A stretch of 64,000 nucleotides of DNA from Glycera tridactyla (Eukaryota): contig OZ286461.1 in assembly GCA_965644265.1 (NCBI GenBank), positions 62,186,001 through 62,250,000 of the forward strand, in the 5' to 3' direction. The position numbers were made by a program, and so were the translations under genes. The first letter of the stretch is position 1. The number at the start of each line of letters is the position of its first letter. Below are positions 430 through 52,800 of the stretch, piece after piece. Below the pieces are notes generated by a model. That model saw nothing but the letters and a program-made list of their open reading frames with translations, was not told the DNA's origin and searched no databases.

Positions 430-627
430 AAGGGCTTCACTCCTCTTCACATTGCTGCTAAATATGGGAACATCAAGGTGGCTCGGCTGCTGCTGCAGAA
501 GCAGGCCGACCCCAACATCCAGGGCAAGAATGGTCTCACTCCTCTGCATGTTGCTACTCACTACAACCACGTCAACGTTGCTCTGCTACTCCTTGAAAAT
601 GGCGCATCACCACACTGCACTGCCAAG
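430..627 (+). CDS. Ank: Ankyrin exon, two ANK repeats (about repeats 17-18 of 24)
   Basis: ttgacag|AAG...AAG|gttggt; 198 nt, phase 0-0; [66 protein letters not shown]. Confidence 0.97.
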
Positions 628-6600: not shown

Positions 6601-9600
6601 TGCTCCTACATGGGAATGAGTGACCAATATAGTTTCATGAGTTGGTTGCCAGTCTTTCACTGGTATCAACAGATGTGCTTCTTGACGTGAATGTGGCGTT
6701 TTTCATGTGAGAAATTTTGTTTGTGAGCTATGGATTGATCGATACCAGCATGGGGAGAGTGTGTGAAAACTGTAACTAACACCATTCTTCATTGTTCATG
6801 ATTGTAATTGTTGTATTTGAGGTCCGTATTGAATAGTTTCACTGTGGAATATCTAGCAAGCATTGTCATTGATGCATTTGTATATATGTGTCTATTGAAT
6901 AGACAGTACGCGTAATTCTTCCTTCATCAGAACAGGTATAGTAAATAATTAACATGGGTAGTGTGTTTAAGGGTTAAGAAGGGTTAGTTATTGACATCGA
7001 GTTAGGTTAACTCTCGCTGTCCATATCTGTTATTTGTCTGCTTCAGTCCCCTTCTATCCACCGATCAGTGTGTCTCAGTATCGAATTGTATTCAGCTCAC
7101 ACAAATCGATCACAAATGGATGCTCCGACTGTTGGTCAGTGGATAGAAATGGAAATTAGCAGACAGTCAACAGAAATGGGCACTGAAGCAGAGAGTTAAA
7201 TTCAGGCCAGTGCCATGAGATTATGAATCTGGCATATCCTGCTTACCCAAAGTTTTATTTATGAAATTTCGTGTTTTCTTGTTCCTTTGTTTGACTGAGA
7301 ACTTCTGATTCACAAACTGACTATCATTTGGAGAGTTTGCACCATAATATGCGAGACATTGACAGTGTACAGAAGTGACTTAATGATTCCTCCATATTTG
7401 ATTACAAACTTGAATAGAACACAAACAAACATTGATTCTGGATTATCGGTCATTTTGGCAGAGTGAAAGTGTTTTCTAGTCACCGTTACATACTGTATAA
7501 GCAAAGATAGGATCGAAAAGTGGTTGGGGAAATACGCATGTACTTCATGTGTGAATGCTTATGCCGCTGTAATGTTGTGATCAAAGTGGAGTGAGCACAT
7601 GAAGTCGGAAAAGGACACACACAATCATATATGATGTGCCCAAAAAGTACATGCACTTCAGCATTCTTTAATGAGATATGGGCACATACAAATCTGAAAT
7701 GGCACATGGAAACTGTACTGATGTATCCAAAAGACCCATACATATTTCTAAGTCAGAAAGTCCCCGCATTGTCCATCTCTATGTTTCTCAATTTACTGCA
7801 CATTTTGGAATGAGAAAAAAGCAAGATGCTTGGATTTGTCAACTTCTGTGCCAGTGGGTTGGCATGATGAGTTTGTTTGCTCAAACCGATGATGTGAACT
7901 TATCTCTTGAGATGGTGATGCTGATATCCAATGCTGATACAGTTGAACCTGCAATGAGAGACCTCCGATGGGAGACCACTGTTGCAGGGCAACTTTCCGA
8001 CATAGTGAAATATACCCCTAACACGAGACCACCTCTTTTTAGAGACAACATTTTGTTGAGTTTTTGGTTGTCTCTCGTCGCAGGTTTCACTGAATCTGCT
8101 CATAAGACTGTGACCAATATTGATGAGGTTGAATCACTTTTGTACACTATTACTGTCAGCATTTCTATCCAGACTTACTCAGAGATGAATATGATGTCTT
8201 CTCTACTCATTGGTTACGGGTTCTCACTAATCAGATTGTTCACAAGTCGATATATTTCCGTATTCATAATCAGATATGATAGATAACCAAGTTACGAAGG
8301 TATTGGGACATCTCGGTATGAGACAAGTCACTCTGTGATATATTACAATATTGATCCCGGGATCTATTGATTACATACAAGCCTTGAGTTTGCAGTTATT
8401 TTTGATACACCTGTGATATGAAATCACCAATATCTGAATTTAATAATCATGTAACCACTGTCTTGATTGAGGATTAATTCTTATCCACTTGTTACTTATA
8501 CTTGCATTTATAACTCAGTTGAGTTTCGAGTTGATTCTGAATTTGATTTGAGTCTTCCCCAATTATTGTTTTTTTCCAGCAAACCAGCCACATTGTCAAA
8601 ATAATGAGTTATTACCCAATCTCTTGTCAAGTGATTTCTGATGGAGTTATGTATGCCTTCATTCATTTGTGATTCAATACCTGTGCTGAGCAACTTTGGA
8701 CATCCCCTGGCTAGGGGGAATGAGGCTTGGAAAGAAATTTAGTGGGACATTGCCATCATCAAGATTATATAAAAGAATTTGAGCCTATGTTTATTCCTAC
8801 TTATGTTCCTTGTAATAATGAAGTGTTTGTTAGAGCAGTTATCATTTTCATGAATAAACAGAATTTGACCCAATTTTTTCCACATATCTCACATGATTAC
8901 GGATAGGAATTTCCCTCTTAATAACTAATCAAAACATTTTGAACTTTCACCAAATTTGACTCTTGACTCTCAATATAGAATAGAGACTGATGTTGGGTTA
9001 TATATTCCAGTATGTTTTGATGCAGTGTTATTTTTGTAAGATGTGGTATTTAGTTCTACCTTGGGTATTTTTCTACCAGCTGAGGATTTGGTTCCCGCCT
9101 CACCAGCGTTTCTACGGGCAACACCAGACCAGAACATTTACATGCCCTACCGCGAAGCAAGGAAAGATGCACAACAGGAACCGGGTAAACATCCCCGCTG
9201 TCTGTGTCATCGCATGTGTTGCTGTGACAACTAATGTTCCCATGTGACCTCCCAGACCCGTATGACCCCACACACACCAACCCCAAACACCCTTGTATTT
9301 CAGCTGACAAACCCAACGATTTAAGTCAGAGCATATTTTAAGCTTTCCGGATGAATTCTTGCCTATATGTTGATTCATATCTTGGCTCAGGGATGAGGGT
9401 AGATGAGAATATCTTTGTTGAGCTGTGAAATACTGTACTTCCTCTTGCCATTTCACATAATTAGACATACCCCCTGAATTTGCGTCAAATTTTCTGTCTT
9501 ATATTAAATGAATCACTGCATTTTAAAAAGTAAAATGGATCAGGATAGGTCAGCCAAGATCTTAATATCTTGTTTTGGATATGGTATATATTGTCACTAG

Positions 9601-12144: not shown

Positions 12145-12182
<38 letters not shown>

Positions 12183-16214: not shown

Positions 16215-16270
<56 letters not shown>

Positions 16271-19200
16271 TGCATGCGTGCGTGCGTGCGTGCGTGCGTG
16301 TGTGCAAACACGAATTTGTGCAGGTGTTAACATGCTCAGATTTCATCATTATTGCCAAGCAGTCTCTAGATTCAAGGTCGTATTCAATGCTTGATCTCAT
16401 CGCCTCGTTGGTGACTCGACATCATCAATAGAGGATAGATCTCATATACATCTCATTCACATCCGTCTCTTTCTCTCTCATTTCTCCAGGTGAAGACACA
16501 ATTCTTGGTGATCAGTCGATGTCGATAGACGACATGAAGTTCCTCGGTGATGACTCCATCACTCCCATCCGGGTACGTAACGCCATATGTGACGTCGTCA
16601 TTTTCGTCATGGTACCCATGACGAAAATTATTGTCTCTTCAATGGACACTAGCATTATTTTCATGATCTTACGATACTTTACTTTTGGTGTTAGATTTTA
16701 ATTTCCTCATTATGTTTCTCCTACTTCTTTTGTTTTCAAGGATATTGAATCAAAACTGACATATTCGATGATTTTCAGACTCGAAGTCATTTCACACTCA
16801 AACCCATCATCATTATTTGGTCCTTTGAAGATTGAAATAAGTATCAATTCAGTGGGTTCTATAAACTACCTGATATTGAACTGATAGCCGAATGTTTTTA
16901 GTTACAAGCTAGTCATCTGTGATGAAATTCCCCAGATTGCTGGAGTATTTACTTTACTTATGTGAATCATTCGAGATTAGTGACTACTGGGAAAAATGTC
17001 AAAATTTTGTTTTCTGCCAGTTGTAATTTGCCCCACTGGTCTTGTGATGTTTTCGTAAGCAAAATTCAAGACAGTTCATTGATATATTTGAATTGTTGTG
17101 AAAAAAAGAACTTTCATTTTGAAAGTAGTGCATAAAAGTGATACAATCAAATTCAAACAAAAATGTTCTGGTCCTTTTGATTCTTTGTGCATTTTTCAGT
17201 CGGCACAAATATTGGGCAATTGGTGTCAGGTTATTCTGTTTCAGTCCTTTTATCCATATCAAAATCACATCAAATTAGAGATATCTCCACATCCAAATTC
17301 TGTTGAAAAGAATCTTATTTTTATGTAATCGATTTTTTCGGTACATTTATTTCATTTCACAAGTTGTGGTGTTGTGAAACTGGTTTTGAGTATCCATATA
17401 CATGTATGTGGTGTGTGAATATGTCGCACTACTTTGGCCTATTGATGTTGTGATGCTTCTTGTATATTTGTGTTGTCAGTGGTTTGTAGCAGTGTTATTT
17501 TACGTATCTAGGACGAATTCTTGACCATGGATCGATTCAGTACAGCGACATCCATGTCAGGATACATGCAGGAAGACATTCAGTACCTGCACTCTGACGG
17601 TGACATGAATGCACCTGTCTTCGACACACTGCCCGGTGAAGCATCCCCGGCAGTCCGCTTGAGACATGGGAGAAATTACGACAGTCTGTCACCTCAGGCC
17701 CGACTGGCTTCACATGAGCGATTACCATCACAAGATCGCTCCTACTATTCTACAGATCCACGTGAATTGTCGCTGGACCGTGACTCAGCTCGCTACTCCA
17801 GGGACAGCGAGAAGTTGTTGAATGACTATGGTAGCTTAACACGGGAACGAGATCCTACCCGCATACATGATCGAAATGTATCACGAGACTCGCGTGATTC
17901 TCGCGATCTCTCAAATGGGCCATATCGCGATACATCAAGAGATTCCAGAGACCTCTCGAGGGATTCCCGGGACATATCACGAGACACATCAGGAGACCGT
18001 GACTACTCACGGGATCGGGATCGACAACCATCCAGAGATAGGGACCGGCGAAGACGACGGCACCGTTATCCATCACACGATCGCTACTCATCTGGTGATC
18101 GTCGTCCCCGATCCCGGTCACATTCAGCGGACCGATACTCACTGCCATACTTTGATAAGGTAAACCTCCTTCAACCTGGTAACATAACCAGCAGCGACTG
18201 CATCCTCTAACATGCTTTCACCGACTACCACCAGGAGGCGTGCTGTGAACTCGGAATTGCGCATGTTCTCCGCCATCATTACTAATGATAAGTTGGGATG
18301 ACAACGAAAGCAGTCTCAGCATGAGAAATAAATGTCTTGTGTGATGCATGTTGTGTCATTTTTCTTTTGTTTGAGATTGCTTCAGTTGTGGTGTTAGATA
18401 GATTATGGTATTCAAGTTACTAGTTTGAATGAAGCTGACCGTGCACTTCCCTGATACCAAATACAAATTCTCGGATGAATTTATGTATCAAGTGAGTGAG
18501 ATGCATAAGATAAAGCCATTGGTTCAAATGACCCATTGTTGATTGGTGATTACTCAGAACCATGCAGTACTTTTCATATTTTCAAACAGTTCCATAAAAT
18601 CGATATACAGTAGAAACTCTAATTTCAAAGATGCCGGCAATATGATTTTGGAGTAATCATCACTATTTTTTGGCTAAAATTACTCCGAGAAATTCTCACT
18701 CTTCTAATTTGACCATTGCAATGATTGTCAACATTACTATGTTTGCTATCTTTTATTATCGGCAATGGAATAGCCATAGTAAGCGCAGTCACCGGCAGCT
18801 TCATGGTATATATAGAAGTGTTTAGATGGACACACCTCATGCTACGGAGCAAACAAAATTATCACACAAAACAGGTGTTGAAAATATTGCGTTCATATTC
18901 CAGGATATTGAGCTTGTTTGAAATCTGGAACATACTGAGAAACTTTCCATCATCTAGACACAGTTGATGTATTGAATCTGTCCAAATTTTGCTCAGAAGA
19001 TTAACTCAGAATGAATATATAGTAATCCTTCAGATTATGCTTCTATTTCTCTGTCAGTGATTCAGGAACTTCAACATTCACAAGTTCATCATCTAATAGT
19101 GTTGATTTGGGATGTGTCCATCCAGGCATTTCATCAGAATAGTTGATATATTTGATGTAAGTGTTCGCATAGCGGCATACAGAAAGAGAGTCTTTGAAGC

Positions 19201-22200
19201 GTTTTCTCGGCAGGAGATCCTCCTTTTCAAACACCAGTTTTCATGATTTTGCAATCAGGCAAAGATTTGGCATTTCACTCATGGCGTGAGTGAAAATTTT
19301 CACGGAAAATGTAATAGTTGTTCCATATTATTCATTGTTCTTTGAATCCAGTACTAATTTAAGTCATTACCTTTCTGATAATTCTGAAATATAAATCAAA
19401 GGCTCTCTACCTAGTAACATGACTTCCTTTTTCAGCAAAACAAGAAAATGAACCATGTAATACCATTTCTACGCCTTAACAGCTGTATGTACCTGAAAGA
19501 TACCAACACATTCACTAAGGAGTTTGCATATGTACATCATTGTATCTCAAACATTTTAGTGTGTTTATGGGCAACCTTGAACCAAACTAACATTGCATGG
19601 GATCCCTTTTTTAGTTTCAATTGGTATTACCATCTCCTATAGAGGAGTCTTATTTCAACTCACATTTGACTCATCCATTTGTTAACCCTACTCACCTGGC
19701 ATTCACAACTAATCTTGATGGAAGTGTGGGCCTTGACTGCTTTATCCATCAGCAGAATAATATGCTTTTCATTTCTCAGCAGCTGGTTGCATTTCCATTG
19801 AATTTGGCTGCCATGTTTGTAAAGGTTTTCAAAGTATTAAGAATAATTTCTTATTCTGAATTACATCTTGCCATATATATTCTAGCTTGTAAATTAAATA
19901 TACAGAATGCAAAAGTAAGAACCCATCTCCATTCAATAGCTAGAGGTCTCGGCTTTTAGTTTTTGATGCAACATTCAGATATTGTTGAAGTGAAAAAAAC
20001 AACATATTCACTGTATAAGAACTTGAAAGATTGTATAACAAGCTTATGTAGTGTAGGTCATATGACACATGAACATAATGAAAGGGAAAGAGAAGTATAA
20101 ATAAACATTATGAGACAAAAAAGCCTGAAACAACTGTAAGACTCAAATACGAATGGCAGGGTGACATGTTTGCAAGACATATGGTAGTAGATGATAAGAA
20201 AGGTACGTATCAGCTAGAAATAGTTTTGGAAAAGTAATCACAAAAACAATTACTAGGACATAGGAGAAAAAATGCTTAGTCAGATGACCAAGTGTTGGGT
20301 AACTTGTATGAGTTGTGAGCTAGAAATAGCAATTCAGTCATTGGGATTCAATTGGGAATAACAAATTCATTTCATTTGGGGAGGGGGGGGGGGGGGGGGC
20401 TGACTATCGAGTCATTGAGTAACTGATTGATATTGCTGTTTTTGAAAACAGGAAATGTGCATCATACTCGACCTACTGTTCGAAATGATTGTAATCGGAA
20501 GTGTTGGAAAAGATAAGAGATAAGATACATGTCTGGCTTAGATATTAGGTCTGTTGACACATCTATCAGTAGTAAAAGTATTCGATACTCAGTGGTTGTT
20601 GAGATGCTTGCGTTTTATGACGGATATTATGCTTATTCAAGATTCAAATATTCTCAGGCATGTGGGATTTTTACAATGAAATGGTAGGTGTCTCCATTAA
20701 GTAAGGAGGAATTGGAATATAGTTTGCATGAATATGGACCGCTTAAAAAACTAATACTTTTTTATTATAACCAATATTACCACCATGAATATTTCTTGAC
20801 GAAATCAATTTACAGATTTGTGATTGATAGACCATGGCTTTGTTGAATTTTTTGTTGATATGATTCATTGGTCTGTTTGTGCATGTTTGATTTAGATCAC
20901 AGACCATGTGTGAAAGCTTTTGAATCAAATTGATGAGTTGATGTGAATTTGTGGGTGAGATTAGTTTTGGCAGTTGGTGTCATTATTTGATCCACACTCC
21001 TTAATTGAGGTTGATAACAATATAAGCTCAGAATCCTCAACTGTAAGATTTCATTCCTTTTCAGTGTCAATGGGGCCTCTTGGAAGCCATACACTGGTTA
21101 TCTGCTAGATTATGCCACCCTCCCATTGAACAGTCACAACATGACTTATCTCGATGCTTTCAATCAGCTCTAAGGAAGATAAATAGGATTGCAACAAGAA
21201 ATTTCAACTGTAATCTGTACCACATTGGCTAGATATTATAGATATTATGTATTATTTGTGTCTGGAAAGCAGTGTTCAGAAAGCAAAACTTTGCAGTGTT
21301 ATCAACTTGATCTTGGACCGCATTGTATAACTGAATTGGAAGGTACTCAAGGTTCGGTCTGGTGAAATCACTTTGCCAAAACTACTGTGTAAGGATATGC
21401 AATGTATAAACTTGGCTCCATCTTATATCAATTTGTGAGCTGGATTTCATCAGAAAATCATTTTAAGTCAGTGCTATAGTCAATGCTGCATTGTATAGCT
21501 AAATTGGAAGGTGCTCAAGATTTGGTCTAGTGAAATTGCTTTGCCAAAACTACTCTATTATGGCATAGAACATATCAGTGCTTAATAACATATAGGAGGA
21601 AGTCTTGAAGAGACATGAGCTCATGGATGCTTTTTATGATTTTATCATTTCAGGAGGAAAAGTTAGAAGCAACCGTTGGTGGCGGAATGCTGATGGCTGG
21701 CAAAGCGCCTTCGTCCATGGACGAGTCACGTGGTAACATCTACGGCTCGTACAGTGGCGCCTCATTCGCCAGCAGTTTCGATCCCGACAATATTGCATTG
21801 GATAGACATCCAATCTACTCTGGGTAGGTTATATCTAAATCTAGCCGAATACATGTACGGTAGTTTCCGTGATGAGAGTCTGTTGTTTTCCAAGATGGAG
21901 TCTGCTCTGCATTCACATTCGATCAACAGAGTAATTGGAGTTCATCAGTTTCGATCACTCCCATGTTTACAGGACCCATGAATGAATAGATCAGATCTTT
22001 ATCAACCCACATATTGGGGCTGCTGTGGAAGTCCTCAAGATTGAAGGTGAAGTGAAATCATTGATGCCAATTTTCCAAGGATTTTCGGAGTTTCAAAAAT
22101 TGAATGGAAATTAGAATTGAACAATTTCTACTAGTTGGTGGGAAGTTTCAGAACATATCCATTTGAGAATATGCGGACTTTTTCCCCAGAAAATTTGATC

Positions 22201-25200: not shown

Positions 25201-28200
25201 CCCTGGTGTACAGCAAACTACAGTGGAAGAGGTAACCACAAAAAGCAGTGTAATACTCGTCCATGCAGATTGTCGTTACTTCGTGTTGTTACATTCAGTG
25301 TTTTCATTCTGCTTCCACCTACTCGCTATAGCATACTTCCACGTCACATCATCTCTTCTCGCAGATGGTGTCCAGTATTTCACACTTTTCCCTTTTTTCT
25401 TTCTATCTGTACACATTTACATTATCGGTTCCAGTCATGAAAAGGCTTCGGTTTTTCATAGGGAGTAATTTATGCTTTGGTTATTTCTAGGGAGTAAATT
25501 TTTGATTTCTGATAATTTGTTTGGCCCATCATGAACAGTTTATTTGCTAATGTATGACTGATAGCTGTCTGTTTCAGGTACATCCATGCCAATAAGAATT
25601 TTGCCAAATGATTTTGAATCTTGATTGCTATGTCTCATAGCTGGCAAAATAGCGTGCATTTTGTTGGATCCAGTTTGGAGGCAGATTTGACTGCACCTGT
25701 GCCAACAATATTTGATCAGTTTCTCAGACTGTATCAAATTATGCACTGAAATTGGATGAAAACATTGATTTCCTTTGGATTCATTGTCATTTGGCTGAAC
25801 AGGTGTGGTGTGCCGCTACTTGTATGTTATGTTGGATGTATGTGATGAACAACATGTCCTAACAATTGCATCATTAAGTTTGACTTTTTGATTTATTTCC
25901 TCATTCTACAGAAGGTATAGTATTAAATGGTGTTCTTTTCAACATACTCAGTGTGGGATTAAGATAGTTATGGGGCTAGTTTAATTTTTCGGCCAGCTAT
26001 CTGTAGATAACGGTCACAAGAGATGTACCTATCTGAGTAGAAACTGTCTTTTTACCTTGTATCACACCATCTGGGATGGATTTGACCAAATTATTGTGTA
26101 TTTAAGATGCTGCATTCCCTCAAAAAACTGTGCTGGATTGTGACTGCTCAACTGTTCTAAATTTGGAATCTGAAGAATTACCAGATTTTCATCATTAAAT
26201 GCATCAAATCATAGTTGCATGAAATGGTTATCATTCCATGATATTCAGTTCCTTGGAAGGCATATAGAACCATCAGTCTTCACTGACTGATTTCAGTCGT
26301 TCAAAATGCTGCAGTCCCTGAAAGTAGGTTCTACTCAGAAAGGCATTAGATGTAACAGCTATACGAATAATCACTCATGGTCTCAGGGTGAACGACTTCA
26401 ATATTCGCTTATCATTCTATTAATGGCCATAATGACAATGTTATAAAAAAGCCATCTTATTGGTGGACAGCTAGCCAATCAGGCTAGCCAATCAGTCAAG
26501 TCACTCTCTCCCACCAGGTGGTGGTGTTCAATGTGGAATGTGACATCTGGTGTCAATTTAGTGAAACACCCTGTAAATTCCTGCTTGGCATGGAAGAGTC
26601 GTTTTGGGGCGTACTGAAGTCGAGCCTTGAGATCAGGGATCTCTGATGGGAAATAACCAACACCCTCTGATTTTGATTTCATTCTCACCTGAACTGTCTG
26701 ATTTCTGTACAGTGATTTTTGAGGCACATGTGTTGTATGTTATGAAGAAAAAAATCAGTGACTTCTTGATGGTCAACCACTGGTCAATACATACTAATGA
26801 GGCATGAAAAAAACATAGCACAGTTATCAAGAGATAATCTGACAAGTTTATGATGATTTTTTATGATAATCAGGTGATCAATACAGAAATCGTAATTGCA
26901 TTATGAATCATATGCATACTCCTTTTTTGATTTGTCGAAAATTTGTTATTTTCCATTGCACTCATGCAAGCAGATTGATTTAGATCCAGCTAATTGAAAT
27001 GATGCTTCTGGCTTTTTTATTGTCAAGAGTCAAAATTGATATTAACCAGTGGTTTGATCCTGATTCTACACTTCTATGATTTGCACCCAATCTGATCTGT
27101 TGGGGGCCGGTGAATCTGGTTTCTGTTGTATTTGTCTGGTGTCTCTTCTCTGTAAATGCTTCAACCTCCTACTATATATATATAAATGTGTGCAAGTACT
27201 GTACATGTCTTGTTGATTTATATGTAATCGGTACTATGTGTATGATGGTGTTGGTGTAATACAGTCAGAGTGTGGGTCTATATTAGCGATCTGTGCTTGT
27301 GTTTGGGCCAGTTGTCAGCCCAATGTTATGGCAGTAGTCCGTATGATTTTGCTGTCAGATGCATCCAATTTTATGTTCAGCATTCTGGATTTTATTTTCA
27401 ATTCAGTTTGGTCACTTCAGCCCTACATACTTGTGACTTCAAAGCTGTTGCCACTATTCCAGTAAGCCTGGCTCTGGTTCTGGTAGCATATGAAAATTTA
27501 TGTGAAGATTCATGTATGAATCTGTCCTCAGACATTTCTAGACGCCACAGGTGACGAAAGTTCTGTTGCATTGAAAAATTTCCAAGCTTTTTTTTTTGCA
27601 AAACTTTCAGAAAGCCATTCAGGTTTCTCCATCAGCTCAGTCAGTACTGTGCAGATGCTCTATTGTGTGACCCCTAAGTGAAAAGAGGATTACATGACCA
27701 CAGAACAGTTTCCTGTTCAAGTTTGCTGTCCGAAGTCTCACCAATTTTCTGTGGTAGATCATAGAGCCTAAAAGCTGATCAGCCATGATCAAAATCAATG
27801 GAATCACAGGTCATGATGATGGGTAGATGTGTACTGAATGGGCTAAACCACATCACTTGTGTGCTATATTTGGTTGATGCTCTTAGATAATGTTCCCATC
27901 ATTGTACCATACTAAGAGTGTCAGTACTTTTTGAGTACATACTTATATCACGGCCATGATCTCACTATTCGTTGCCCATATGTGGCCACATGATGGTCAA
28001 TTGATGCGGAAGCAACCTCAGACTGGAGTAGAGAATCCAACATTTTTTATACATTTCATTTATGAGCAAGTTAGGTGCATCGTACATGATGTATTTCCCC
28101 CTATAGTATACAGTTGAATCCTGCTACCGTCATTTTAGGTTGGAACCAAATGTAGCAGTTTTGCTTCTTTTTTATTTTCCTTCAGTTGCCCAGGTTGATA

Positions 28201-34200: not shown

Positions 34201-37200
34201 GAGTTGTACAGTAAGCGCATCACCCGCATCTTGACAGCTGATTTCCCACAATACTTTGCGGTCGTAACACGCATCAGACAAGAGTCAAAGAGCATCGGGC
34301 CAGAGTCGGGCATGCTGAGCTCGACTGTGGTCCCACAGGTACAGGCTGTCTTCCCAGAGGGTTCACTGACGAAGAAGATCAAGGTTGGACTTCAGGTATG
34401 TTGATCCCTATTATTTCACTTAATACCTGATTTGCATTTCCTATGTTCATTATTTGACAGATCCCTTGAAAACTTCTCTTGATATCCCATGTGCACATCA
34501 AGGCTCTTTGTGTGTATTGATGAACATTAAAATTTGTCACCATATGACAAGTGTACACATGAATAGGTGCTATGCACTTACAGGAAATAGATCTCAAATT
34601 GTGAATGGTTCATCCATACTAATTGACACTGTAGTTGTGTTGACCCAGCACCTAACAAGATAGCAAAATTGTGTTTCTTTCCATGCAACATTGTCATTTA
34701 AATTTTTATCAGGCTCAGCCCATTCCACCAGAAGTCGTCTCAAAGATGCTTGGTAATCGGGTCGCCGTCAGTCCAATCGTCACAGTCGAGCCACGCCGCC
34801 GCAAGTTCCACAAGCCCATCACTCTGACGATACCTCTTCCTAAGGCGTCTGGGAAGGGCATGATGAACCAGTACTCGGGCAGCGAGGCTCCAACACTGCG
34901 ACTCCTGTGCAGTATCACTGGTAAGCGTAAGTTGTCAGTTTCGCGTGCTTACTCCTTTCTGCCAGGGACTAAGGAGAAGCTTAGTGCCGCCCTGCAGATC
35001 AGTGAGCATGCATCCCAGTGCCCGATTTCAAGGGCGTTGCTGTACCACACACATGAACCTCCAGTCACCTTCACCACTACCAATTCTCTATAGGATACTT
35101 TCCTTCTTCTCTATACTCTTCTAATCAAGTTCGGCATATTTTCACAACCTGATCATCCTTCTTTATCTGAAACTCTTCTCTTTTTATTACCGTTTTTCAA
35201 AAAAAGTCACCATCCAAATTCACGTGGAGGTTATGTGAAAGTAGGAGATTTTTTCCAGCTAGATCTGATTTTTCTGTCTTGGATTATGTGTTCATTGAGT
35301 GTGCAATGATACAGTATTTTCTTGATTGCTATCACGTTTGAGTTGGAAAACAGTTTGGTTTGATTCGCCGAGTTTGTTGTTTTGATTACACTTGTATCTT
35401 GATTTGAGCTTCTCCCGCTTCTCAGTGATGAATTTATTAGTAACCTCAAATTGAAACTCCATGCATACATCGATGCAAGCAAAGCAAACGACATGTGGTC
35501 CGTCAGTCTGAGATCTCGGAACCTGAGAATGCCGCTCTACTAATCCGGGCAGCAAACAGTATGAGTGATTTGTGAATGCCGATTGAATTAAACAGCTTCT
35601 CCTCAACATCAATTTCATACACGAGTGCATTTTCAAACTCAACTGGCAGTTAGCAGTGACTGGCACTGCAGTTTGCTGTTCATTTTTTGTATGGATTCCA
35701 CTCAACTACCATTCATTGATAACTGACCACAGTCAAGGTATCCTTCTGAAATTCTGGTTTAAAGTAATACTCAGAAGGTGGTGGCAACGGACCAACCAGT
35801 GCATACTTGCATGGCTCTTTTGATAACCATTTGATTTTTAGATGAGGTGTATTGAATCAGTTCCCAGTGCCAATCTGAAGTAAGCATGGATTCTGATTAC
35901 AGTTCGGCATTAGCACCTCATACCATGATCCAAACACTGGTACAAAATTGGGAATATGTTCTTTTGGCTATTTTTTCTCATCATCAGCTGTAATATATTT
36001 TGCATGGCATCTGGCATAAGCCACATGCAGTATGGAAAATAATGAAATTCTTGATCTCTTGGTGTGAACTTCAAGGTCTTGGAAAGTACTGTGAGGCAAG
36101 AATGAGCCTATCATGAAGCTGGAGTTGAGTTTCTTTTACGATCTGTGCTCATTCGGTGCAAGGCGCTAGAATGCGCGCATTGTCTGAGTAGAGAGGCGAA
36201 GATGTTATGGAGTTATCGCTGTTTAGTTGAAGTGCCTGTAATGATCTGTGGAAGCTGTGGTTTTCGATGTACGTGACGCTGGCATGGGTTATAAGTGTGC
36301 TTGCATGTGTGTGCATCTCAAACTGCAGATTAGGATGAGTTTATCTTGCTACAAGACCACTATAAACCGACTAAACCAAGCCTGCCAAAACCTTATCCCC
36401 CTCCTTAGCCTTTGCAGACCCATACCCATTGGCGAACCCTTTCATGTAATGCCACTTTTGAAAAATCTCACCTAAAATTGAGTTGATTGCTCAAACAGAA
36501 CTATGGATCGGGTTCATATAAGATACCAATGTCTTTTGGATTTTCATTTGCATCATACAGTTAAGAGACTGGCTGATCTTGACTACATTTTGAATGGCAT
36601 TAATGAATTTCAAGCATGAAAGGGTTGAATATACTTTTTTGCCAAAGATCCTACCTAAATCCCACTGTACATTCACACCCTTTATAATCATTTTCTCTGT
36701 ATGACAAGGATGTGGATGATTTGTTATCATTGGAGGTATGAACCACTTGTTCTTCGTGGGATGCACATTACGATTTTGTATTCTGGATGTGGTTCTTGAG
36801 AGACTATAACGATGAGACACAAAACACTCTTGTTGACTGAATGTTGCATTGCTTTTGCGGATGATATACATTCTGGGTATTTTCATTCAGGGGCTAAGTG
36901 ATTGAAATTCTCGTGCAAACTGGATTTCTGCTGTTACGGTTAATGTGGGACGTTGCTTTCTTCCTTCTCTGTGTTTAGACAGTCTGCCATCATTTTACCT
37001 ACCCACTTGTTTGCAGAAGACAGTGTCCTACCAAAAATCTTGCCAATTGAAATTAGTGGCCTCTCAACCTGATCTGGAGCCAAGGTCATAGGTTGTGTTC
37101 AATCCCCACTGCCTATTCTTTGCTGTTGCATTGTTGATCTTCCATAACTTGGCTCATTCATGTGATTTTCACATTGTCAACCCAGACAAATTGAGTTTAA

Positions 37201-38030: not shown

Positions 38031-38118
<88 letters not shown>

Positions 38119-38246
38119 ACACATGTGTGTGCTCCTTGTTGCTACCTGTGAATATCCAATGGCTATTACTAGTATACTTGGCATATTGGTATATAACTTC
38201 TGTTAGCAATTTGACAGTCATACCCCCCCCCCGGTATTGGTTCACT

Positions 38247-38304
<58 letters not shown>

Positions 38305-40829
38305 AGGGTGAGTGGGTGGGTGGGTGGGTGTGTTTGTGTGGGTGTGTTTGTGTGGGTGGGTGTGTGTCTAAGTACATGTTCCATGATGCTACATGTGAAT
38401 ACCCCATGGCTACCATACTCGTGATATTGGTATCCAATTGCTGTTAGCAATTTGAGAGTTATAATATATATAATAACTTCATGAATTTCAGGGCTAGCTG
38501 TCTCAAACTTTGTGTACCTCCTTTTCTAGACTATGGATTTACATCTTGAATTTCAAGGTCACTGAGTGCAAAATGGTTTCCGAACAATAACTTCATGAGT
38601 TTCGGGGGTAGCCTTCTCAAACTTGGTGTACAACCTCTCATAGACTATGGCAACACACCCATCGATTTTTCAGTGGCCATCTTCAATTTCAAGGTCACTT
38701 AATGGAAAAAGTGAGTTTCTGGACAATCACTTCATAAATTACATGGGTGGCTTTGACAAACTTGGTGCACAGACATTCCCTGGCTATGGCAAGATTTTGG
38801 GGTTGCCATCTCAGTGTGCATCTACAGGCTAGTGGTGATGCACTGGTATGTTGCCAAAAGGTCAAAGGTCAAGGTCACAGGAGCTATTTTCAGAATTTGA
38901 GAATATGGACAAATCTCACTTGGTGAATTGTTTTAGTTTCCTGGGTCACTGATCAAGACCTGATCAAGAGCTTCCCTTGTCAGCAAGATTCCACTCAAAC
39001 CGCTGACCCAAATTCAACTGAACTTTTCTGATGCCTAGGCATATTCTCGTGGACAAATCCTACACAAAGAGACCCCCCTGTACCCCAGTACACCTCATAC
39101 CCCAGGACACATTTTCACTCAAAGGATAGATGTCAACCAATAATGTCTAGCTTTTCAGTGAGCATGCTCACTTGAAGATGAATAAGCAAGCAGGTGGACC
39201 CAGGCATGTATGCGGGTGGTGAATAATTACAAAGTCTGGGGGAGACATATTGAGTGAGGAGGTGCCTCACTAAAATTCTAGTTGACTGTTAACTTTAATC
39301 CTTTCATTCTCTCATTCATTCTCTCTATTGTGAAATTCCATTTGTGTTTATTTTTTCATCAAAGTATAACGGTTGCGACCGAAAATGATATTTCTTATTT
39401 ATATGATGATAAATATGAGAATGAAGGGGTTAAGCTTTATATGTGCTTCTACACCTACTGCTCCAACAATAAACCACAAAAAACACTTGCACGACTGAAC
39501 AGAACCATGTTGATTGTGGGATTGTAAGACTCCGCCAGCTAGAAAAATTTGTTGCCCAGTTAGCTGAAAGATGAGCATCAGATTGGCTCAGTGCTGCTTT
39601 CTTTGTCCCATAGAAGCCTTCAGTTGTCAAAAGGCTGACCACATGGGCTTGGTTTTTGGGTCCGACCCTTGGTTTATAGTGCGCTTGTAGCCCGCCCTCC
39701 CATTGCATTCAACTCCCTGTTCATGTTGTCCAGATCTTGCCCGAATTACCTGTCCTGCTAATTGAGAGCTTTCCGTGATGGGGTATGTCACTGAGCATGC
39801 CCAATGACACATCCCGGGAGCTGTTTCACTGACCTCAAAGTGGTATGGCTCAGCCCTGATTTCATGCCTGGTCCAGCGGAAAACAGTGGCAATGGGTCGC
39901 AGCAGACATCAGGTATGGCGCCAGTGCTGGTCCATTTGCGGGCGAGCATTGGCTCAGTAAACTCCTGGTAACTTCTCAATATTTGCTTGAGTTGAGTGAA
40001 ATATCCCGTTGAGTGCTCGACCTGTCTATCCGATGTATGCTCTACTAATGTATGATACATATATATCATGTTCTGACTGGACGTTAACTTGAGTATTGGT
40101 CTAGTAGGCCAGTTATCTGTAAACCCTCCACCCGCCAACAGCTACGATTTAGTGAGTAAGGCTGCTTTGTTACTACTCCCTACTAATGGTATGCTAATGA
40201 GATGCTATTAAGATGCTGTTTTGTCAATTATAATGATGTTATCAGTCTGCAGTAAATTGTATGCCTGTTACCCAGTCAGTATCCAGGATTGAATTGGCAT
40301 GACCCTTGATTCACCGACTGCAGCGTCATGAGTAAAAGTTTTTTCTCTCTGTCACTAATGACTTCGTCGATGGTAATATTTCCAGTTTGCCTCTCACCAA
40401 AGCATGATTACCAGTCTTGTGAAACAGGAATCTTTTCCGGCTGAAACTTGTCATGTAGTGTCCAGAATATTATATCTGATCCTTCAGCCGATATTTGAAT
40501 GTATTTCATCATGATCTTGTCGTGGGCCATTAATATAGCAATATCCACCAATGATTCATAGTTTGCTGGAGTGAAGCACTATACATTTCTCCTGCTCTGC
40601 CTGAAATTAGTGTGGCACCTGTGATTGCTGTTCAGCTCATTGATTCACATATAGACTTCCTCTTGCATTGAATATCATAATAGCCAATATTATGTATCAA
40701 TTGAACTTATAACTGACCCGTCAATGATTTGGACATCTTGACTTTAGTAGTTCAAGAACTTTAATTCAGTGAATTCAGTGTTGATGATCATTTTCAAAAG
40801 GGAACCTCCAACTGTGATCATTTCCCAGT

Positions 40830-40879
<50 letters not shown>

Positions 40880-43800
40880 TTTGTTGTGACCAATCCAGTC
40901 TGAATAAAGATGATTTGGGTATGATCCCTCAGGCTCTCAATGAAGTATGTGTGGCTGTTATGAAATGGAAGACAAGCTCCGGCTGTTCTTTTTCTTCTTC
41001 CAAACATAAGTCAAAATAGCGATGGTCACTCATCCAAAACGCACCTTGAGATACCGTATACGGATAAGGCCTCTATGGAAGATGTAATATTGGGATAAGG
41101 ATCATGTGTGATATTGTAGACACTGTTTGATGAGCTACAGTGTGTAAGCTATGTGTAATCATTACTACCATTATCATCATTACTACTACCACTACTACTA
41201 CCTCTATTACTACCAGTATTTTGCTGTTTGCTGTACTACCAATACTTGCCGCAATATTTGATGACCTGCCATGTTTTGACACTGATACATATCTCTTAAC
41301 ATTACCCCGGTTTTATTTCAGTTAACTTGTCGATAGCCGTTCTCAACCTTTCACAGTAAAGTAATGGACACTGCTACTGTCTTAATACCTTTAATTAAAT
41401 ACTCTTCCACTGCTGTACATATGTGATTCTGTAGGTACCAGTTCAAACCCTCTTTGTTTAGCTCGCCCTCAGTTCATATCGTCATCTTTTTGTTTGTTTT
41501 GTCCATTATTTGAGTTGACCTGGTCAGCACAGTGCATGAAATCATCCATAACAAATACTCCTTCCAACCATGCTCCTTTCTGTGTCATGTTTTAATTTCT
41601 CACTCTTTCCTCCGTCTATCCGTCTGTCCAGCTCTCACTCTGTTTGTGTCTTGGACACTGATCAGTTGCTCCCACCTTTTGAGTTTCATCCAGAAGCCAC
41701 CTCTTTATGATGTGATTCTGTTGGGTTGGATCCAGGACAGCCGTCCGGCGTTTATGTTGTTAGCTCCTCTCATTTTGTGGCCAGGTGCCTGCTTTTGTGT
41801 GTGTCCCATTTTACAGATTATTTTCAATTTTAGACTAGGGTACGCTTTATATTCCTCCACTGGAGAGCACGACATTCAAACAAATTCTCAAAAGCCGTTG
41901 ATGGCTGTCAGACATGAGCACACAAAGGTTTCGAGAAAGTGAGCTAATTTTGAAAATCGGGAGGTTCCGGTGTGGCCCATTCAGTCTTGGATGGCGCTCA
42001 ACCAGCACCTTCTCCCCCCTTGCGGCGCGCGAGTGCTAACATCTGCTTGACTACATGAGGATATTGACCTTGGTAACTGCAGCAGCAGCCATTATGACCT
42101 TGGCCCCATGATCCCCGTCTTCTGCTGGGTTCTCACAACAAACCTCTTGCTCTGGTGAGCCACGTGAGGCGGTTTGCCTCTTGCAACTGTAAGATCTCCT
42201 CCATAGTGAGTCGGCCAATTTTTTTCCATCTTCATGCTGAATTTTTTTCAACTTGTCATTTTATATTGCATCCGTAGTGAACTGGTTATTTTGGTGCATT
42301 GTTCCTGCTTTAGTTTCACCTATTCTGTCCTCATTTGCTTTCAGGTCACTTATATTGTAGGCTTACTGTATTGTAGTTCAAAATAGTGTATATTTGGTTT
42401 CATTTTCAATTTGTTTATGAGCGCTTGTATTTAGAGACTCCTGAATTTGTATGTACTTGGTGTCACAACTGAAATGGCCAGGTTTACAAAGACAGGCTCA
42501 AATTATCATCGACTTTTTCCAAGAATAACCTGCAGTCAGTGAGCAAGACTGGATATTCATAGAGGCCCGTGAACTCTTGGCGAGATTACTGTAGTCAAGT
42601 TTGTGTGTATGTACGTGCGTGTGTGCGTCAGTGAGTAAGTTTGTTATTAGTGCTTTTAACCACTTAATATTTTCACCCATTCTTATCTACTTGTACATAT
42701 CCTTCACCATATTTCACTGAATTCAGAAGCAGTATTTTTATGTACATATATACATGCATAAATATGTATGAAAAATCAATATTGCTGCATCGATATATAT
42801 GTACATGATATTCAGATCTATCCAGTTTCTTTTCCAAGCTTCTTTGGTGTTGAACGGTGACCTTTTTGTTCATGCCCAGACCGAGCCCGTGAACCATTTT
42901 GAAGAAGTTTGCACTGTCACTCTACTGATACTCCTTTCTTCCTGTATGTCTCCTGCCCGTCCATCTCTCCCCAAAAGCCACCACCGCTGCTGTTGCCGCC
43001 AACCATTGCTGCTCACCCACCACGTCAGCTATTGTGTCGTCCTGTCAAGCCCTGCCATACCACATGTCATGTCTCCTTATTTCAGTTTGTTCATATTTTG
43101 AGTTCCGTTTCTGTTGTTATCGGCTGAATGGATTGAGTCGCGGGTTGGGATGACCCTTCATGATTAGTGCTCCCATATGTGTTTGTTGTTTCTTCCCGTC
43201 GTTCCTTATTTCTCATCTAAATCCAGGATCAGTTGGCGGGATCACCTTTTTCGCATCGGCAAGAAATAGGTGATATCCTGCGACTAACTCTTTCAAAGTC
43301 CAGATGGAGCATTCAAACACTTGGCCAATTATGCGAGACTGATCTTTGGTTTACGTGAATTTCATTTCCCGTTCGAGATTCTAAATGTATCCCGGTACCT
43401 TCTGGTAGAAGGGTGTACTATTTTGGTACTCAGTTATATCCTCGTATTTTGAGTTCAACATTGTAGTTTATTTGTTGGTTTCTGTTGATTTCCTTTTATT
43501 TGCCAAGCAGAATCCAGTGAGCAGGGTATGTTGATTTTTTCTGGTGGACAATGAGGAAGTTTATTCTTGTCAAATTAGAAACACGTGGATGGTGGAAGCC
43601 TTTCATAGTTTTTAACTTCTGGGAGGATGGATACAATTTTCTCATTTTTTTTCCTGATTGGCCAAAGCATGTGGATTGTGTGGAGGGGTTTATGATATCT
43701 CTTGATATTGACTGTGTGAGTGACGCGTTTTCTGTGTGTGCCCCTTGTTTCTAGGTGAAACAATGGCATACATGAACAATGGTGGTGGTGGCGTCACCGA

Positions 43801-46800
43801 CGTCAGCTTGTATAACCAAGGTAGACGAGACATCACGCGTCTCCACGCTCTTCTCTCTCACTCGCTCTCTCGCTCTTCTGTTTTTGCCATCCATATCGCT
43901 CTACCTCTCTCTTATTACATATTTTATATGTATGTATGTGCATATATATCTGTCTGACGTGCCACTCACTTTTGGTTTGGTCGGCCTGTCAACGCTCTTC
44001 AGTGCGGGAGGATCGTGCCCATCACATTTGCTTCCTTGTGTACATTTGCATGTTTATGGTTGTCATAAATACACATCATACATAACAATTGGAGAATCTT
44101 CCCAGATAGCATGTTGTATACAACATGTTTAGCAAGAAGATAAGTTATCAGGTAGTCTGTAATATAGCCAGAAGGGGAGAAAAAAGCAGGATGCAAATTT
44201 TCAATTTGTTCCCATTCACATTTACTGAATATTGATTCTCAAATCCACCTCCAATTTGAATTAGAGTGATGTTGCATTGATGTATGAAAATTGCAGTGGT
44301 TTCTATTTGCTGAAAATCATCTCAATTCAGTGCATACTCTAATTTGGAATTTCCCATCAATTTAATGACTCAATAGATCTTCAAGCGTCACTTCCTCTAC
44401 ATTTCAAATAAAACTTTTCAAATCTCCATTCTGATTTCCATCTGCTCTTTTCTCCCCCTGTATATTTTCCATATTTCAAACTAGAGAGTACTTATTCTAC
44501 TAACATTGAAGAGATGTCTTATCATATCAGTATATATCTAATAGTGCAATTGATGGAGATGCTTCCAGAGACAATTTGAAGGCTGTTGTCGCCATATATG
44601 TGAGTTGCGCTTTGGGTGAGGGTGTCTTTCATCTGTTTGGATGGGTGAATCGCAAGCATTCAACATCCAACATCCAAGTCATCATCATCTGCATTTTCAT
44701 CATCATCCCCATCATCCTCATCCTCATCATATATCCATCTGTGTAGCATTCTTCCCATCCCGTCTCATGTTATGTGTTTTTCAGCTGCTTTCTCTATGCT
44801 CTCACGCTATTGATGTCTTCAATTTTTCAGTTGGCCTCTTGTTTTGTGGGTGTCTTGTGTGGCTGGGCAGGCTTGGCTACTGCGTCTCATGCTATAGTAT
44901 CCGCGTGTCCGTGGGATTTCTTCGTAGCACTGCCGTGTAATGTTAGAAGCTGGGTGCCAGATAAAAGACAAAATATAGTCAAAATGACTCGGATCTGAAA
45001 AAATGCACCTGAAGCACTAGAATCAATTTCAAGAGGTCTCTTGACCCCCATGTTTGAGGCACATTCTGCACAAGTGTATGCACTGTGTGTTTTTGTAAGC
45101 GTGTGTACAAGTTTTCATGTGCAATCATTCACGTTGAGTTTGATGACTATTTTCAGTATATTATGATATCCCATGATACATTCATCTAAGTCAAAGGTCA
45201 CGGACCTCTGAACAGTTAGTCTTGCTACATGTTGTGCACATTTTACCACAAATCACCCATAAAGGGCTCCGGCTCTACGGCTCTATTTCGCCGTGTAGAA
45301 AATGATCCTCACTAACGTAAGATCATCCGAATTCCTGGCCATTTTAGTTTGGGCTGTATATGTCTTGACATAAATGCCTACATATTTTGTATCATATTCT
45401 GTTATACATGAGCTTTAGTATGATGTGCTTATCTGGGGAGTTTCTGCAATGTACCGCTCTTGCACCATGCACACATAATCATTGTACACCCTTTCTCGCT
45501 TTGTAGGTGGACCCTCTCCGGCACAATGGGAGGACATCACTGGGACCACTCCACTTTCTTTTGTCAATGATTGCGTATCTTTCACTACAACTGTATCTGC
45601 AAGGTGGGTGTATATATCATCCTTATATTTCACGGAATTCTTTTGAAACGTTTATAAAAGTTGCCCATCTTAATTGAATTATGCACACGAGAGAAGTGAA
45701 TTATTCGATGTTATGTAACCTCAAATGACCGCTGCACCAGCAGAGGGTCCATTTTGGCAAATGAAGAAAAGTGCTTACCAAATATATGTTATGCAATGTG
45801 TGTCAAAAATCGCCAGTAATTCATCCTCCACCAAAAAAGTGAATTTAATTTATGCTAGAACTGGCTCAGTTTTTAAATTTTTCATCTGACTTTGTGTGAA
45901 ATTGGTATTTTTCATTCACATGTGCATACTTATTGCAGTCAGTTGTGAAAACTCATAGACTGATGTAAGAATCATAGGTATTTATGATGTCCAGATATCT
46001 GAGCTACCAGTCGTCAAATGACTTGTGTGTTTATCACATATGGCAGCTTGTTTCATTTATGAGCTGTGAATTCGATGAATTCCAAGTAATGCAGTGAGAG
46101 AGTGAAATGATGTAATTCACTGGTCCTCACTGCAATGTCACTGCTCCGGAGCGGTTCGGCAGGTGTGAATTTTACATAATGTCCTGTTCTCCGGATATAA
46201 AGTAAGAATTGCCATCATTACCATTTCGATTGATAACTGATACTCATTACTCCTAAATGGTCACAGTAATCAGAAAAATGGACTGAGATTTTCAGTCAAC
46301 ACTTTTTTTGCTCAAAATCCTTATCAAGTCAGAGAAATTATCTTTTTTTTCATCGCATTCAGAACACATCTTTGTATGAACAAAAGTCCTGAAATTTCGT
46401 ATCTACACTTTATATTCTTTGGTTGGAAATTTAATCCACTCTGTGATCATGATGATGTGTCACATAGGAGATACCAAATGGTTTCAGGGATTATGTTACA
46501 ATGATGGTCAACTGCACTTTCTTTCTCTTTCAGATTTTGGTTAATGGATTGTCAAAATATGAACGAAGCAGCAAAAATGGCAGCCGAACTGTATCGCGAT
46601 GCCATAGCTGTGCCATTCATGGCCAAATTTGTAGTTTTCGCTAAACGACCAGATTTACATGAAGCTCGATTACGGTTATTCTGTATGACCGACGATAAAA
46701 TGGAGAAGACATTAGAGAACCAGGAACACTTCCAAGAAATCGCACGAAGTAGAGATGTAGAGGTAAGTATCATTGTCTACAAAAGCTGGTTTGTTGGTCT

Positions 46801-49800: not shown

Positions 49801-52800
49801 CAGTTGTGCAAAGTGCTTGGAAATCATTGTGAGTCCTTGAAAGTGCTTGAATTTGATTGCTGTGATGAAATATGTGAAAAATCATGGAAGTGCTTGATTT
49901 CTGTACGAATATGACCAGAAAATCCCCGATTTGTCATATGCTGACAGAAACATGACTCACAAGCAGTTGGATCTCACAACAAGGGCACCCTCACTTAGCA
50001 ATATTGAATGGTAGAATTTTGCCTATATGTATGAAAACAAGAGGTTATTGTGATTTGTATTGCATCAAATCTCCTAGTAGATGATAAACATTGATGTAGG
50101 TCAATGTAGCGAATGAATTTTCTCAGAGTCAACTAATGTGTAGCGGCGATAATCAGAACTAATGATGGCTTTGAGCAGATTGATGCATGAAAAATTATTT
50201 CTTAGACACAGGTAGAGGGCTTGAAAAACTAGGCGAGTCCTTGAAAATTTCTTGAAGAGAGCTTGAATTTTTTTCTCAGAATTTCTGTATGACCTGGGAA
50301 AATAAGGATTGTCAAGCTCTCTGGGTGGTACTGGGCTGAGATAAGCCATAACAGTCAAACAAACAAGCTGACAACAATAGAAAACTCATGAAATTTTGGG
50401 TGTCATATGCCAGGTTTGAATCAATGCCAGAAACAGCATGTAGTCAATTTTGCTCAATGAGTGTTGTGTCATCTCTTAACTCATGATGTATGTTTCATTT
50501 CAGAATTTGATGTACTTAAAGAAGAACTGGGCCCATCACGAGATTCATCCATGCACCGAGGAATGTCATTGGATGTTTCCTACGATGAACAAGACATGAT
50601 GAAGGTGAGTGTAGTGCTTGTTTAATATCCGTCTATATCGTATTCAGTGGACAGTTCTAGACGATCTCAATGGTTGGCTTGCAGTATGATGCACACACTG
50701 TCAATTCTTGGTGATTCCACTTGGCAACTGTTGAGGCTTTTTGTCTCACCTCTTCTCTTCACTGCTTAATATGCTTGATATCTTGACTGTCATCAGCGTT
50801 TTCTTAGATGCAGGATACTTTCAAATGTGATCGTGAGCAGATTTTGTTCAGTGAATAGTTTTGGCAGTGTTTGTATTCCTATTTGCTCAAAATAACTCCC
50901 TCACATTATACAGCGTCTAGTTATAGCCTGGCCATTATTTGATTTTTTTCTCAAATTCACCCAATCGGTAATAGTTTTGTTAGCAGTATTCTTCTTTTGC
51001 TCAAATCATCCATTCACATCATACAGTGACTAGTTTTTGGCAGTCATCACTCCTATTCATCCAAATCAATTCATTCACATCACAGAGTGACCTGTTTTTG
51101 GCGAGCATTATCAATATTTTTACAAACCGACCCATTCATTTCATGACTGTGACTAGTTTTTGCAGTTTCTCCTATATGTCCCAAATTGATCGATTTTATC
51201 AGAGAGTGCCAGGTTTTGATGATATCATCATCATGAATTTATCAATCATCCCAACATTTTTGGTATTATTATTTTCATGAGGGTCACCTGACTGATTCGT
51301 GCCCTTACAAGAGAATGATCTGAACCAAATGACTTGATTATCACAGCATGATTTTAGTTGTCTATCTCGGGGAATATTGTTAATTCAATATGATCACTTC
51401 TTGCCCATGACTCTTTGCATGTCTACCTCTCAAGTTCATGGTTATTCTCGAAACTTGTTTTAAAGCAATCTCAAGTGTGCAACTCGGGGTGCAGTAGGTT
51501 GCATTAGCAAAGGTGTGGAAAATATCATCATTCTGTCTCGTTCTACTCTTATCTCCAAGCATCAAATGAGACCGAGAGGAAGAATAATCAATTGTAGACT
51601 AAAGTTTTTTTGACTTTTTACCATAAGATTTAATAACAGAACTGCTACTTCACTATGTAGCAAGACTTGATCACTACAAGTGATGTTTTCAACAATTCCA
51701 ACATAAGTTGATTTTATGGACTCAATTCTCTTATGGGACCAGTGCTGGTGTACTTGAAGAGGTGAATTGGTGTCTAAAAGCAGATAGCTTATAGGGTTGT
51801 TGATCTAAAATCACATAGATTTTCAATGAGCCAATGGTAGCCCTCTGTGTACTGGTTGCTAATTTGTTTTATTGCCATAATGACTTTTCAGTTTTTGATC
51901 AAATGCAGTTTTTGATCAATGGCAGCAAGACATCACCTCAATTCCTCATTAAATAGGAATGTGTACTGCAGATATTTCCTATTTCATCTTGCATCTTTGC
52001 CATCTGAATTAGGAATGAATTTGTGACACTGTGATTCACACATATGACGGACCCACTTGCAATCACTTCAGATATGAAGGTCATAGTTTTAAGAAAGATC
52101 AGAGAGTGTTTATTCAAGATTTAATGGTATGTAGATAAGTGACACCGTCATGCAGCTAGAATTTGATGGATGTGAATGTCCTGTAGTGGTTCGGAAATGA
52201 AATTTAACATAGACTGACTGCATCCCACACAATATCTCTGTTTCTAGCTTGATTGCAAGTCATGTCTAGCTGCTTGCTCACTGGTTTTCTTCAATCTCTG
52301 ACTGATTCTGCCCTTTGTTTTTGCATCCCGTGTTGTCACTCTAGGCATATGAAGATATAATAGAGGTGAGAGCCACGGTTATCAGCGTGGCGACGCAAGT
52401 TTGTCTGTGTGTCTTTCTTGTTGTCGCCCTCTTTCTACATTCCTGCCCACTCGTGACTTTGCTGGACTGAAACTTGTTATGTTTTGTTTAGGCGTTCTGA
52501 CTTGTTATATTTGTCAACTAATCCTCCGTGTAGAGATATGTGTATACCACCACCGTCACCACCACAAGCACCACCACAAGCAGCGCCACAACCATGCAAT
52601 GATAGCAAGAACAAATAATTGTCCTGGAGAAGCAAACTCTGCTTGATACTAATGCCGCAATCTCCTGACAAATGAATCATATGAGGATGGCCAGTTACAT
52701 AGTCAGCTATGCCATCATTGGGTCAAGTATGTTCATGTAGAGTAGGTAGAGGTGTGTCTGAAGTGTCAGCTACTTCCACTCAACAACCTTTCAGGTTCCC

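Follow-up and report, generated by a model that had tools for sequence, protein, structure and literature searches.

Through ankyrins, ion channels and adhesion molecules are linked to the spectrin skeleton; where in neurons this happens depends on the ankyrin isoform. In vertebrates, single mini-exons of Ank3 alter the binding of spectrin or of the InsP3 receptor, and neuronal excitability. A 33-nucleotide (nt) mini-exon of Ank3, which sits just upstream of ZU5, is reported to lower beta-IV-spectrin binding (PMC6906172, bioRxiv 10.1101/2023.10.29.564567). In vertebrate ankyrin-B and ankyrin-G, strand beta0 of the extension strengthens spectrin binding, and the junction between this extension and ZU5N is exactly the site of the insertion, and an insert there should disturb beta0 (bioRxiv 10.1101/2020.03.04.976142). 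Vertebrate ankyrin mini-exons are already well described and invertebrate ankyrin isoforms are known as database models; our literature search found no paper on protostome small exons or on the peptides they insert. Here we analyze a 64-kilobase (kb) stretch of the Glycera tridactyla genome (assembly GCA_965644265.1, contig OZ286461.1, positions 62,186,001 to 62,250,000; hereafter the window), the plus strand of which carries the middle part of a lophotrochozoan ankyrin gene, with ankyrin (ANK) repeats followed by ZU5 (twice), UPA and death domains.

We consider it probable that this gene contains a set of four real, small, frame-preserving exons at domain borders, and that the most likely working point among them is an 18-nt exon, ME2, acting on spectrin binding. 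What deserves attention is that ME2 appears to belong to a protostome-wide microexon at the junction that vertebrates use as a spectrin switch. A preliminary description of the window, made from the letters alone, had proposed at least five such segments, listed here with the phases and features found in our analysis:

9080-9184, plus strand: ME1, 105 nt, phase 1 to 1, in the linker between the ANK repeats and ZU5
25214-25231, plus strand: ME2, 18 nt, phase 2 to 2, encoding KLQWKS between the extension and the first ZU5A strand
39877-39912, plus strand: ME3, 36 nt, phase 1 to 1, with good splice sites and a TGC at -12
43755-43820, plus strand: ME4, 66 nt, phase 1 to 1, in a loop of ZU5B
52345-52365, plus strand: ME5, 21 nt, phase 0 to 0, encoding AYEDIIE in the tail

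In the mechanism that we propose, small phase-symmetric exons would sit in long introns at domain borders, beside the constitutive exons of the gene. ME1 would give the ANK-ZU5 linker a conserved linear motif, ME2 would place its six residues at the very point where the N-terminal extension meets the first ZU5A strand, ME4 would extend a surface loop of ZU5B, and ME5 would append an acidic heptapeptide after the death domain. Because each of these exons keeps the frame, each could be included independently of the others, and the number of isoforms would multiply.

A microexon at the extension/ZU5A junction

ME2 is the best-supported of the small exons. Its 18 nt encode KLQWK plus a split Ser codon, and the window reads ...HPIYSG/KLQWKS/FLVSF across the junction. 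For comparison we used genomic loci of relatives (L001, L006, L010, L011, L012, L014 and L015), and among them ME2 recurs as an exon of 18 or 21 nt in three related lineages. In L010 (16733-16750) and L011 the peptide is the same and so is the donor, GTAACC; two differences, both synonymous, separate these exons from ME2, amid intron that is otherwise unalignable with the window. The counterparts in L014 (6654-6671, 18 nt, KLKWK) and L015 (7127-7147, 21 nt, QKLKWK) both lie some 0.7 kb 5' of ZU5A.

In protein sequences, KLKWKS occupies this junction in Pomacea, Babylonia, Octopus, Arion and Mytilus, and RLKWKS in Saccostrea. Chelicerates have KLKWKT or RLKWKT (Tachypleus and spiders) and SKLRWKT (tick); insects have KLHWKN (Coccinella), RKLSWKS (Ceratitis) and IPSWKN (Chelonus), and the crustacean Artemia has KKLHWRQ. 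In Drosophila, a KL(S/H)WK exon belongs to Ank2. The Priapulus, Schistocerca and sea-star isoforms that we compared have no peptide of this type. The mollusc and chelicerate isoforms considered here and below are annotated or transcript-derived database models, and they include cases of optional use: KLKWKS is included in two of six Arion vulgaris transcript isoforms and skipped in the other four, and the Trichonephila models P0014 and P0153 differ by exactly six residues, KLKWKT. All 15 listed Saccostrea isoforms contain the peptide.

The extension encoded in the window shows visible homology to its vertebrate counterpart (..DTLDNVNLVSSPVHSG). A PDB search with the extension exon alone gave no meaningful match. 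In the lizard Lacerta, ankyrin-3 X11 reads ...PIHSG, then an 11-residue insert, YSSPLPQYDSS, and then FLVSF, which is the same junction as that of ME2; the insert corresponds to the known 33-nt mini-exon of Ank3. From the position of ME2 at the junction of the vertebrate mini-exon, we infer that it would tune spectrin binding in a similar way. A broader hypothesis, to which we give a little less than an even chance, is that the KLKWK-type microexon has served across protostomes as a splice switch at the beta0/ZU5N junction for more than 500 million years, that vertebrates regulate spectrin affinity at the same intron with an unrelated 33-nt mini-exon, and that a short conserved exon further downstream would make a truncated ankyrin. 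If so, either regulated spectrin binding at this junction would be ancestral to bilaterians, or the same intron would have been exonized twice for the same purpose.

The linker and the tail

The peptide encoded by ME1 can be aligned over almost its full length, starting at the first codon, with proteins of Pomacea, Babylonia, Octopus, Saccostrea and Tachypleus. In mollusc and horseshoe-crab proteins its homologues directly follow the end of the ANK domain, ...DSEDEG(G), and they share with ME1 the motif ..P.SP.F......(Q).(I/V)Y(L/M)PY.E. Colinear genomic exons are present in L012 and L014. The homologue is skipped in one of 15 Saccostrea isoforms and present in 6/6 Arion isoforms and in every other mollusc or chelicerate isoform compared. 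ME1 is therefore a real and old exon that is probably included most of the time.

The preliminary description had added that the 648-nt exon (17512-18159) might be skippable, which is so in principle, as the exon is phase-symmetric. It encodes 216 residues, 51% of which are Arg (42), Ser (35) or Asp (34), and no homologue was found among all fetched proteins or loci; in comparison with L012, only the acceptor and the first 27 nt align. An optional cassette of 125 residues occupies a comparable position in Saccostrea.

ME5 has an orthologue in L001 (17203-17220), which is 18 nt long, encodes ANEELK, and shares a conserved acceptor region and a GTGAGA donor. At the corresponding protein junction, after ...DEQDM(I/V)K, Pomacea reads NLEDIK and Elysia NLDDIQ, an optional LSVE occurs in Saccostrea, and the isoforms compared from Babylonia, Octopus and Mytilus have nothing inserted.

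Elsewhere in the tail, an intron holds a frame-preserving 24-nt candidate with good splice sites (57238-57261, IEDYIQLK) that is loosely like the ME5 and NLEDIK inserts. That part of the window has no alignment from L001, L014 or L015.

The ZU5B loop intron

The intron that hosts ME3 and ME4 splits the protein between ...LRLLCSIT-G and G-PSPAQWED. Short optional inserts occur repeatedly at this junction in relatives: two of six Arion isoforms have GNSSHGR and 14 of 15 from Saccostrea have GSNNALR, chelicerates have STKSG, SRMSG or SSKSG, Ceratitis and P0102 have VFRKRSLKG, and Octopus has KR. Apart from ME3 and ME4, the intron holds the following features that are conserved in relatives:

34921-34926, plus strand: the six bases that separate two tandem GTAAG donors (the pair lies in 34920-34932); the tandem is conserved in L001, L006 and L014
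41322-41359 (block 41259-41442), plus strand: strongly conserved element between ME3 and ME4 that resembles an exon, with a stop in frame and a good acceptor, TTTCAG
43991-44114, plus strand: conserved intronic block, 170-290 nt 3' of ME4, with 74% identity to L001

ME4 has an orthologue in L001 (7253-7315) that is 63 nt long, differing by a 3-nt indel, with both splice sites conserved and the same frame open; eleven bases of the downstream intron are conserved too. Within the block 3' of ME4, a TGCATG at 44047-44052, 227 nt downstream of the exon, is conserved in L001. UGCAUG is a classic Rbfox site, and the block may be an Rbfox-type enhancer. At the tandem donors, use of the second site would add Lys-Arg to the ZU5B exon; the Octopus isoform P0013 reads ...SISGKRGTTP, and many genomic open reading frames (ORFs) show the region as a GKRK read-through.

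Two further observations were made nearby. A second pair of tandem donors, also six bases apart, lies at 30910-30916 at the end of the second ZU5A exon, and both of its sites keep the frame. Just upstream of the ZU5B exon at 45.5 kb, 24 bases (45430-45453) are identical in L001 within an otherwise unalignable intron.

The element at 41322-41359 is the most conserved part of the ZU5B intron, with 34/34 positions identical to L006 and 32/34 to L001, as compared with 72-88% in coding exons. Read in phase after ...CSIT, it encodes a 12-residue hydrophobic peptide followed by a stop, and an ORF of 10-13 codons plus stop after a TTTCAG acceptor is kept in five species (the window, L001, L006, L014 and L015). 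An ATTAAA at 41394 is kept in L006 and not in L001. This pattern suggests that the element is likely a truncating exon, either terminal or poison, in which case it would give a truncated ankyrin ending inside ZU5B with a conserved hydrophobic tail. A reading of the conserved block at 41.3 kb as structured RNA was rejected: it matched no Rfam family, and its fold was no better than those of shuffled sequences.

Gene model

The window shows the canonical ankyrin domain order, as judged by Pfam and by matches to PDB chains (6M3P, 6M3Q, 3UD1, 4D8O). The best-matching named proteins are ankyrins of molluscs (Pomacea, Octopus, Babylonia, Saccostrea, Elysia, Arion and Mytilus), with chelicerates next. 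Constitutive exons were placed by tblastn matches and splice sites, with phase followed arithmetically, and were searched singly rather than as a joined spliced model.

427-3059, plus strand: exons within this span encode the ANK repeats (Pfam Ank)
3697-3865, plus strand: last exon of the ANK domain and linker, phase out 1, placed by tblastn to mollusc and chelicerate ankyrins and by splice sites
16490-16572, plus strand: constitutive linker exon, GEDTILGD..., phase 1 to 0
17512-18159, plus strand: exon of 648 nt with a high share of Arg, Ser and Asp, phase 0 to 0, placed by splice sites
21654-21823, plus strand: extension exon before ZU5A, phase 0 to 2, the vertebrate equivalent of which forms strand beta0 (bioRxiv 10.1101/2020.03.04.976142)
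29.8-30.9 kb, plus strand: ZU5, first copy (Pfam ZU5)
29858-30082, plus strand: first ZU5A exon (Pfam ZU5, E=4e-22)
34.7 kb, plus strand: ZU5, second copy (Pfam ZU5)
34713-34920, plus strand: ZU5B exon ending ...LRLLCSIT plus G, phase out 1 (Pfam ZU5; PDB 6M3P, 6M3Q, 3UD1, 4D8O)
45507-45603, plus strand: ZU5B exon after the loop intron, with an acceptor that takes phase 1
46.5 kb and 47.4 kb, plus strand: UPA (Pfam UPA_2)
48.5 kb, plus strand: death domain (Pfam Death)
50504-50604, plus strand: exon 3' of the death domain, ending ...DEQDMMK, phase out 0

Alternative explanations

The structural claims of the preliminary description hold for all five segments: each is preceded by a pyrimidine tract and AG, followed by GT, a multiple of three in length and free of stops in the phase that its host intron requires (for ME4 and ME5 this is the sole open frame), and each lies where it was said to lie, in the ANK-ZU5 linker, at the edge of ZU5A, in the ZU5B loop or in the tail after the death domain. 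This structure by itself is not above chance. The four host introns contain 2,003 frame-preserving, stop-free AG..GT segments of 9-120 nt, and simple splice-site filters leave nine of these, including ME2, ME3 and ME5. Decoys such as 7069-7134, 43511-43525 and 57193-57261 pass on splice-site quality alone. The segments could accordingly be read as chance pseudo-exons, and ME3, which is without a conserved counterpart in any related locus, fits such a reading; as an explanation of the whole set we consider it extremely improbable. For ME1, ME2, ME4 and ME5 there are colinear orthologues whose borders and peptides are conserved and whose lengths differ in multiples of three, amid otherwise unalignable introns. 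For these four the pseudo-exon explanation is already refuted; we judge them to be genuine conserved exons on the grounds of this conservation, since splice structure alone says little. Conservation thus separates the proposed set into four exons that stand and one, ME3, that has no support and is either young or spurious.

A more serious alternative, albeit one that we regard as unlikely, is that the conserved small exons are plain constitutive exons in this species, merely easy to miss and forming no combinatorial program. It agrees well with the near-universal presence of the ME1 homologue (14/15 Saccostrea isoforms, 6/6 in Arion and all other mollusc and chelicerate isoforms compared) and with the presence of the ME2 peptide in 15/15 listed Saccostrea isoforms. 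However, ME2 is skipped in 4/6 Arion isoforms and in one of the two Trichonephila models; in Arion and Saccostrea, inserts of the loop and the tail are optional, and they differ from one gastropod to another. Counterparts of the window's exons are therefore optional in relatives: in Arion, KLKWKS and a loop insert each appear in 2/6 isoforms, and among the Saccostrea isoforms some leave out the ME1 homologue, a loop insert or a tail insert. The flanks of ME2, ME4 and ME5 are also unusually CpG-rich, and a conserved intronic block of the kind that follows ME4 is usual for regulated exons. The preliminary description had called all of the flanks CpG-rich, and this is borne out in part, as the 200 nt on either side of ME1 to ME5 rank at the 67th, 95th, 80th, 98th and 91st percentile of intronic windows, respectively, and those of constitutive exons scatter around the median. 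With regard to its proposal that many isoforms arise by shuffling of small exons, the matching pieces are optional in relatives, and from these we infer that the exons would be used optionally in G. tridactyla too; an effect on spectrin binding and specificity to nerve cells are putative.

Several results weigh against four optional exons with a working point at ME2. No transcript of the same species emerged when the 648-nt exon, the ZU5B exon and the exon preceding ME2 were each used as protein queries; the matches, where there were any, were genomic ORFs of relatives with 88-91% identity at best, and no search returned a contig or protein of the species itself. ME1 may be near-constitutive, given that its homologue appears in nearly every annotated isoform of relatives. 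ME4 was detected in one of four related lineages and not in L006, L014 or L015. ME3, which is single-copy within the window, has no DNA or peptide similarity in L001, L006, L014 or L015, nor a comparable candidate in their introns. AlphaFold2 modeling of the Arion ZU5A region, once with KLKWKS and once lacking it, gave mean predicted local distance difference test scores of 35 and 43, and the models were discarded as too poor. Finally, ME2 and the vertebrate mini-exon have no visible sequence similarity, so that the functional analogy between them is one of position.

The means of regulation is a separate matter. The preliminary description had drawn on the neural microexons of bilaterians, which Srrm3/4 proteins with an eMIC domain drive through UGC in the 3' splice-site region, and had noted TGC 10-23 nt upstream of four segments. 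On this reading a Srrm234 eMIC protein would drive inclusion here, in a neural microexon program like that of flies and vertebrates. The motif is there, at -18 (ME2), -12 (ME3), -16 (ME4) and -23 (ME5), as compared with 19% of intronic AG sites and 3/14 constitutive exons, for a nominal binomial P of 0.006 with a distance window picked after the data had been seen. Near the orthologous exons it is kept in two of five comparisons, ME5 in L001 (-17) and ME2 in L015 (about -12); upstream of ME2 there is none within 45 nt in L010 or L011 and none within 30 nt in L014, and the 45 nt upstream of ME4 in L001 have none either. Part of the supplement to the eMIC paper has mouse ANK2 among its gene lists and gives, for Drosophila Ank2, longer exons only. 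The lengths of ME2 (18 nt), ME3 (36 nt) and ME5 (21 nt) are within the usual microexon range (multiples of three up to about 51 nt), whereas ME4 (66 nt) and ME1 (105 nt) exceed it and, with it, the typical length of eMIC targets. The conserved UGCAUG 3' of ME4 favors Rbfox-type control at least equally. Overall, the UGC/Srrm idea is weak, and we doubt that an eMIC protein drives the inclusion of these exons.

Comparison with known systems

Ankyrins of molluscs and chelicerates (Arion vulgaris, Saccostrea cucullata, Pomacea canaliculata, Octopus bimaculoides, Trichonephila clavata) occur in isoforms close to what we propose here, with homologues of ME1 and ME2 and with loop and tail inserts in several combinations. 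Their loop inserts, and those of dipterans (GNSSHGR, GSNNALR, STKSG, VFRKRSLKG), are dissimilar to ME3 and ME4. An ME2-type exon common to molluscs, annelid-like relatives and arthropods would offer a direct route to testing whether an ankyrin-spectrin affinity tuned by splicing is ancient. The locus also provides gene annotators with concrete small exons of a kind that ordinary gene finders miss.

The Srrm3/4 (eMIC) program resembles the window in its short exons of a multiple of three nt in a neuronal scaffold gene and in UGC near the 3' splice site; it differs in that the UGC here is mostly unconserved among orthologues, and Srrm dependence and neural specificity are putative. The Ank3 microexon E35a (27 nt, PMC13046794) offers a parallel to ME5, being deeply conserved, a multiple of three in length, located in a disordered stretch beside the death domain, and able to alter partner binding. 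E35a lies between UPA and the death domain, whereas ME5 follows the death domain and the next exon, and the two sequences are unrelated.

The nearest parallel to ME2 is the mini-exon of vertebrate Ank3 (and Ank2), exon 34 or 27a, which like ME2 is a cassette of a multiple of three nt between the beta0 extension and ZU5N. The two differ in what they insert, 11 residues in the vertebrate case as compared with six basic and aromatic residues in ME2, and control by Rbfox together with Elavl3 is known in vertebrates only. Invertebrate ankyrins carry conserved small exons at sites of the same kind as the vertebrate ones.

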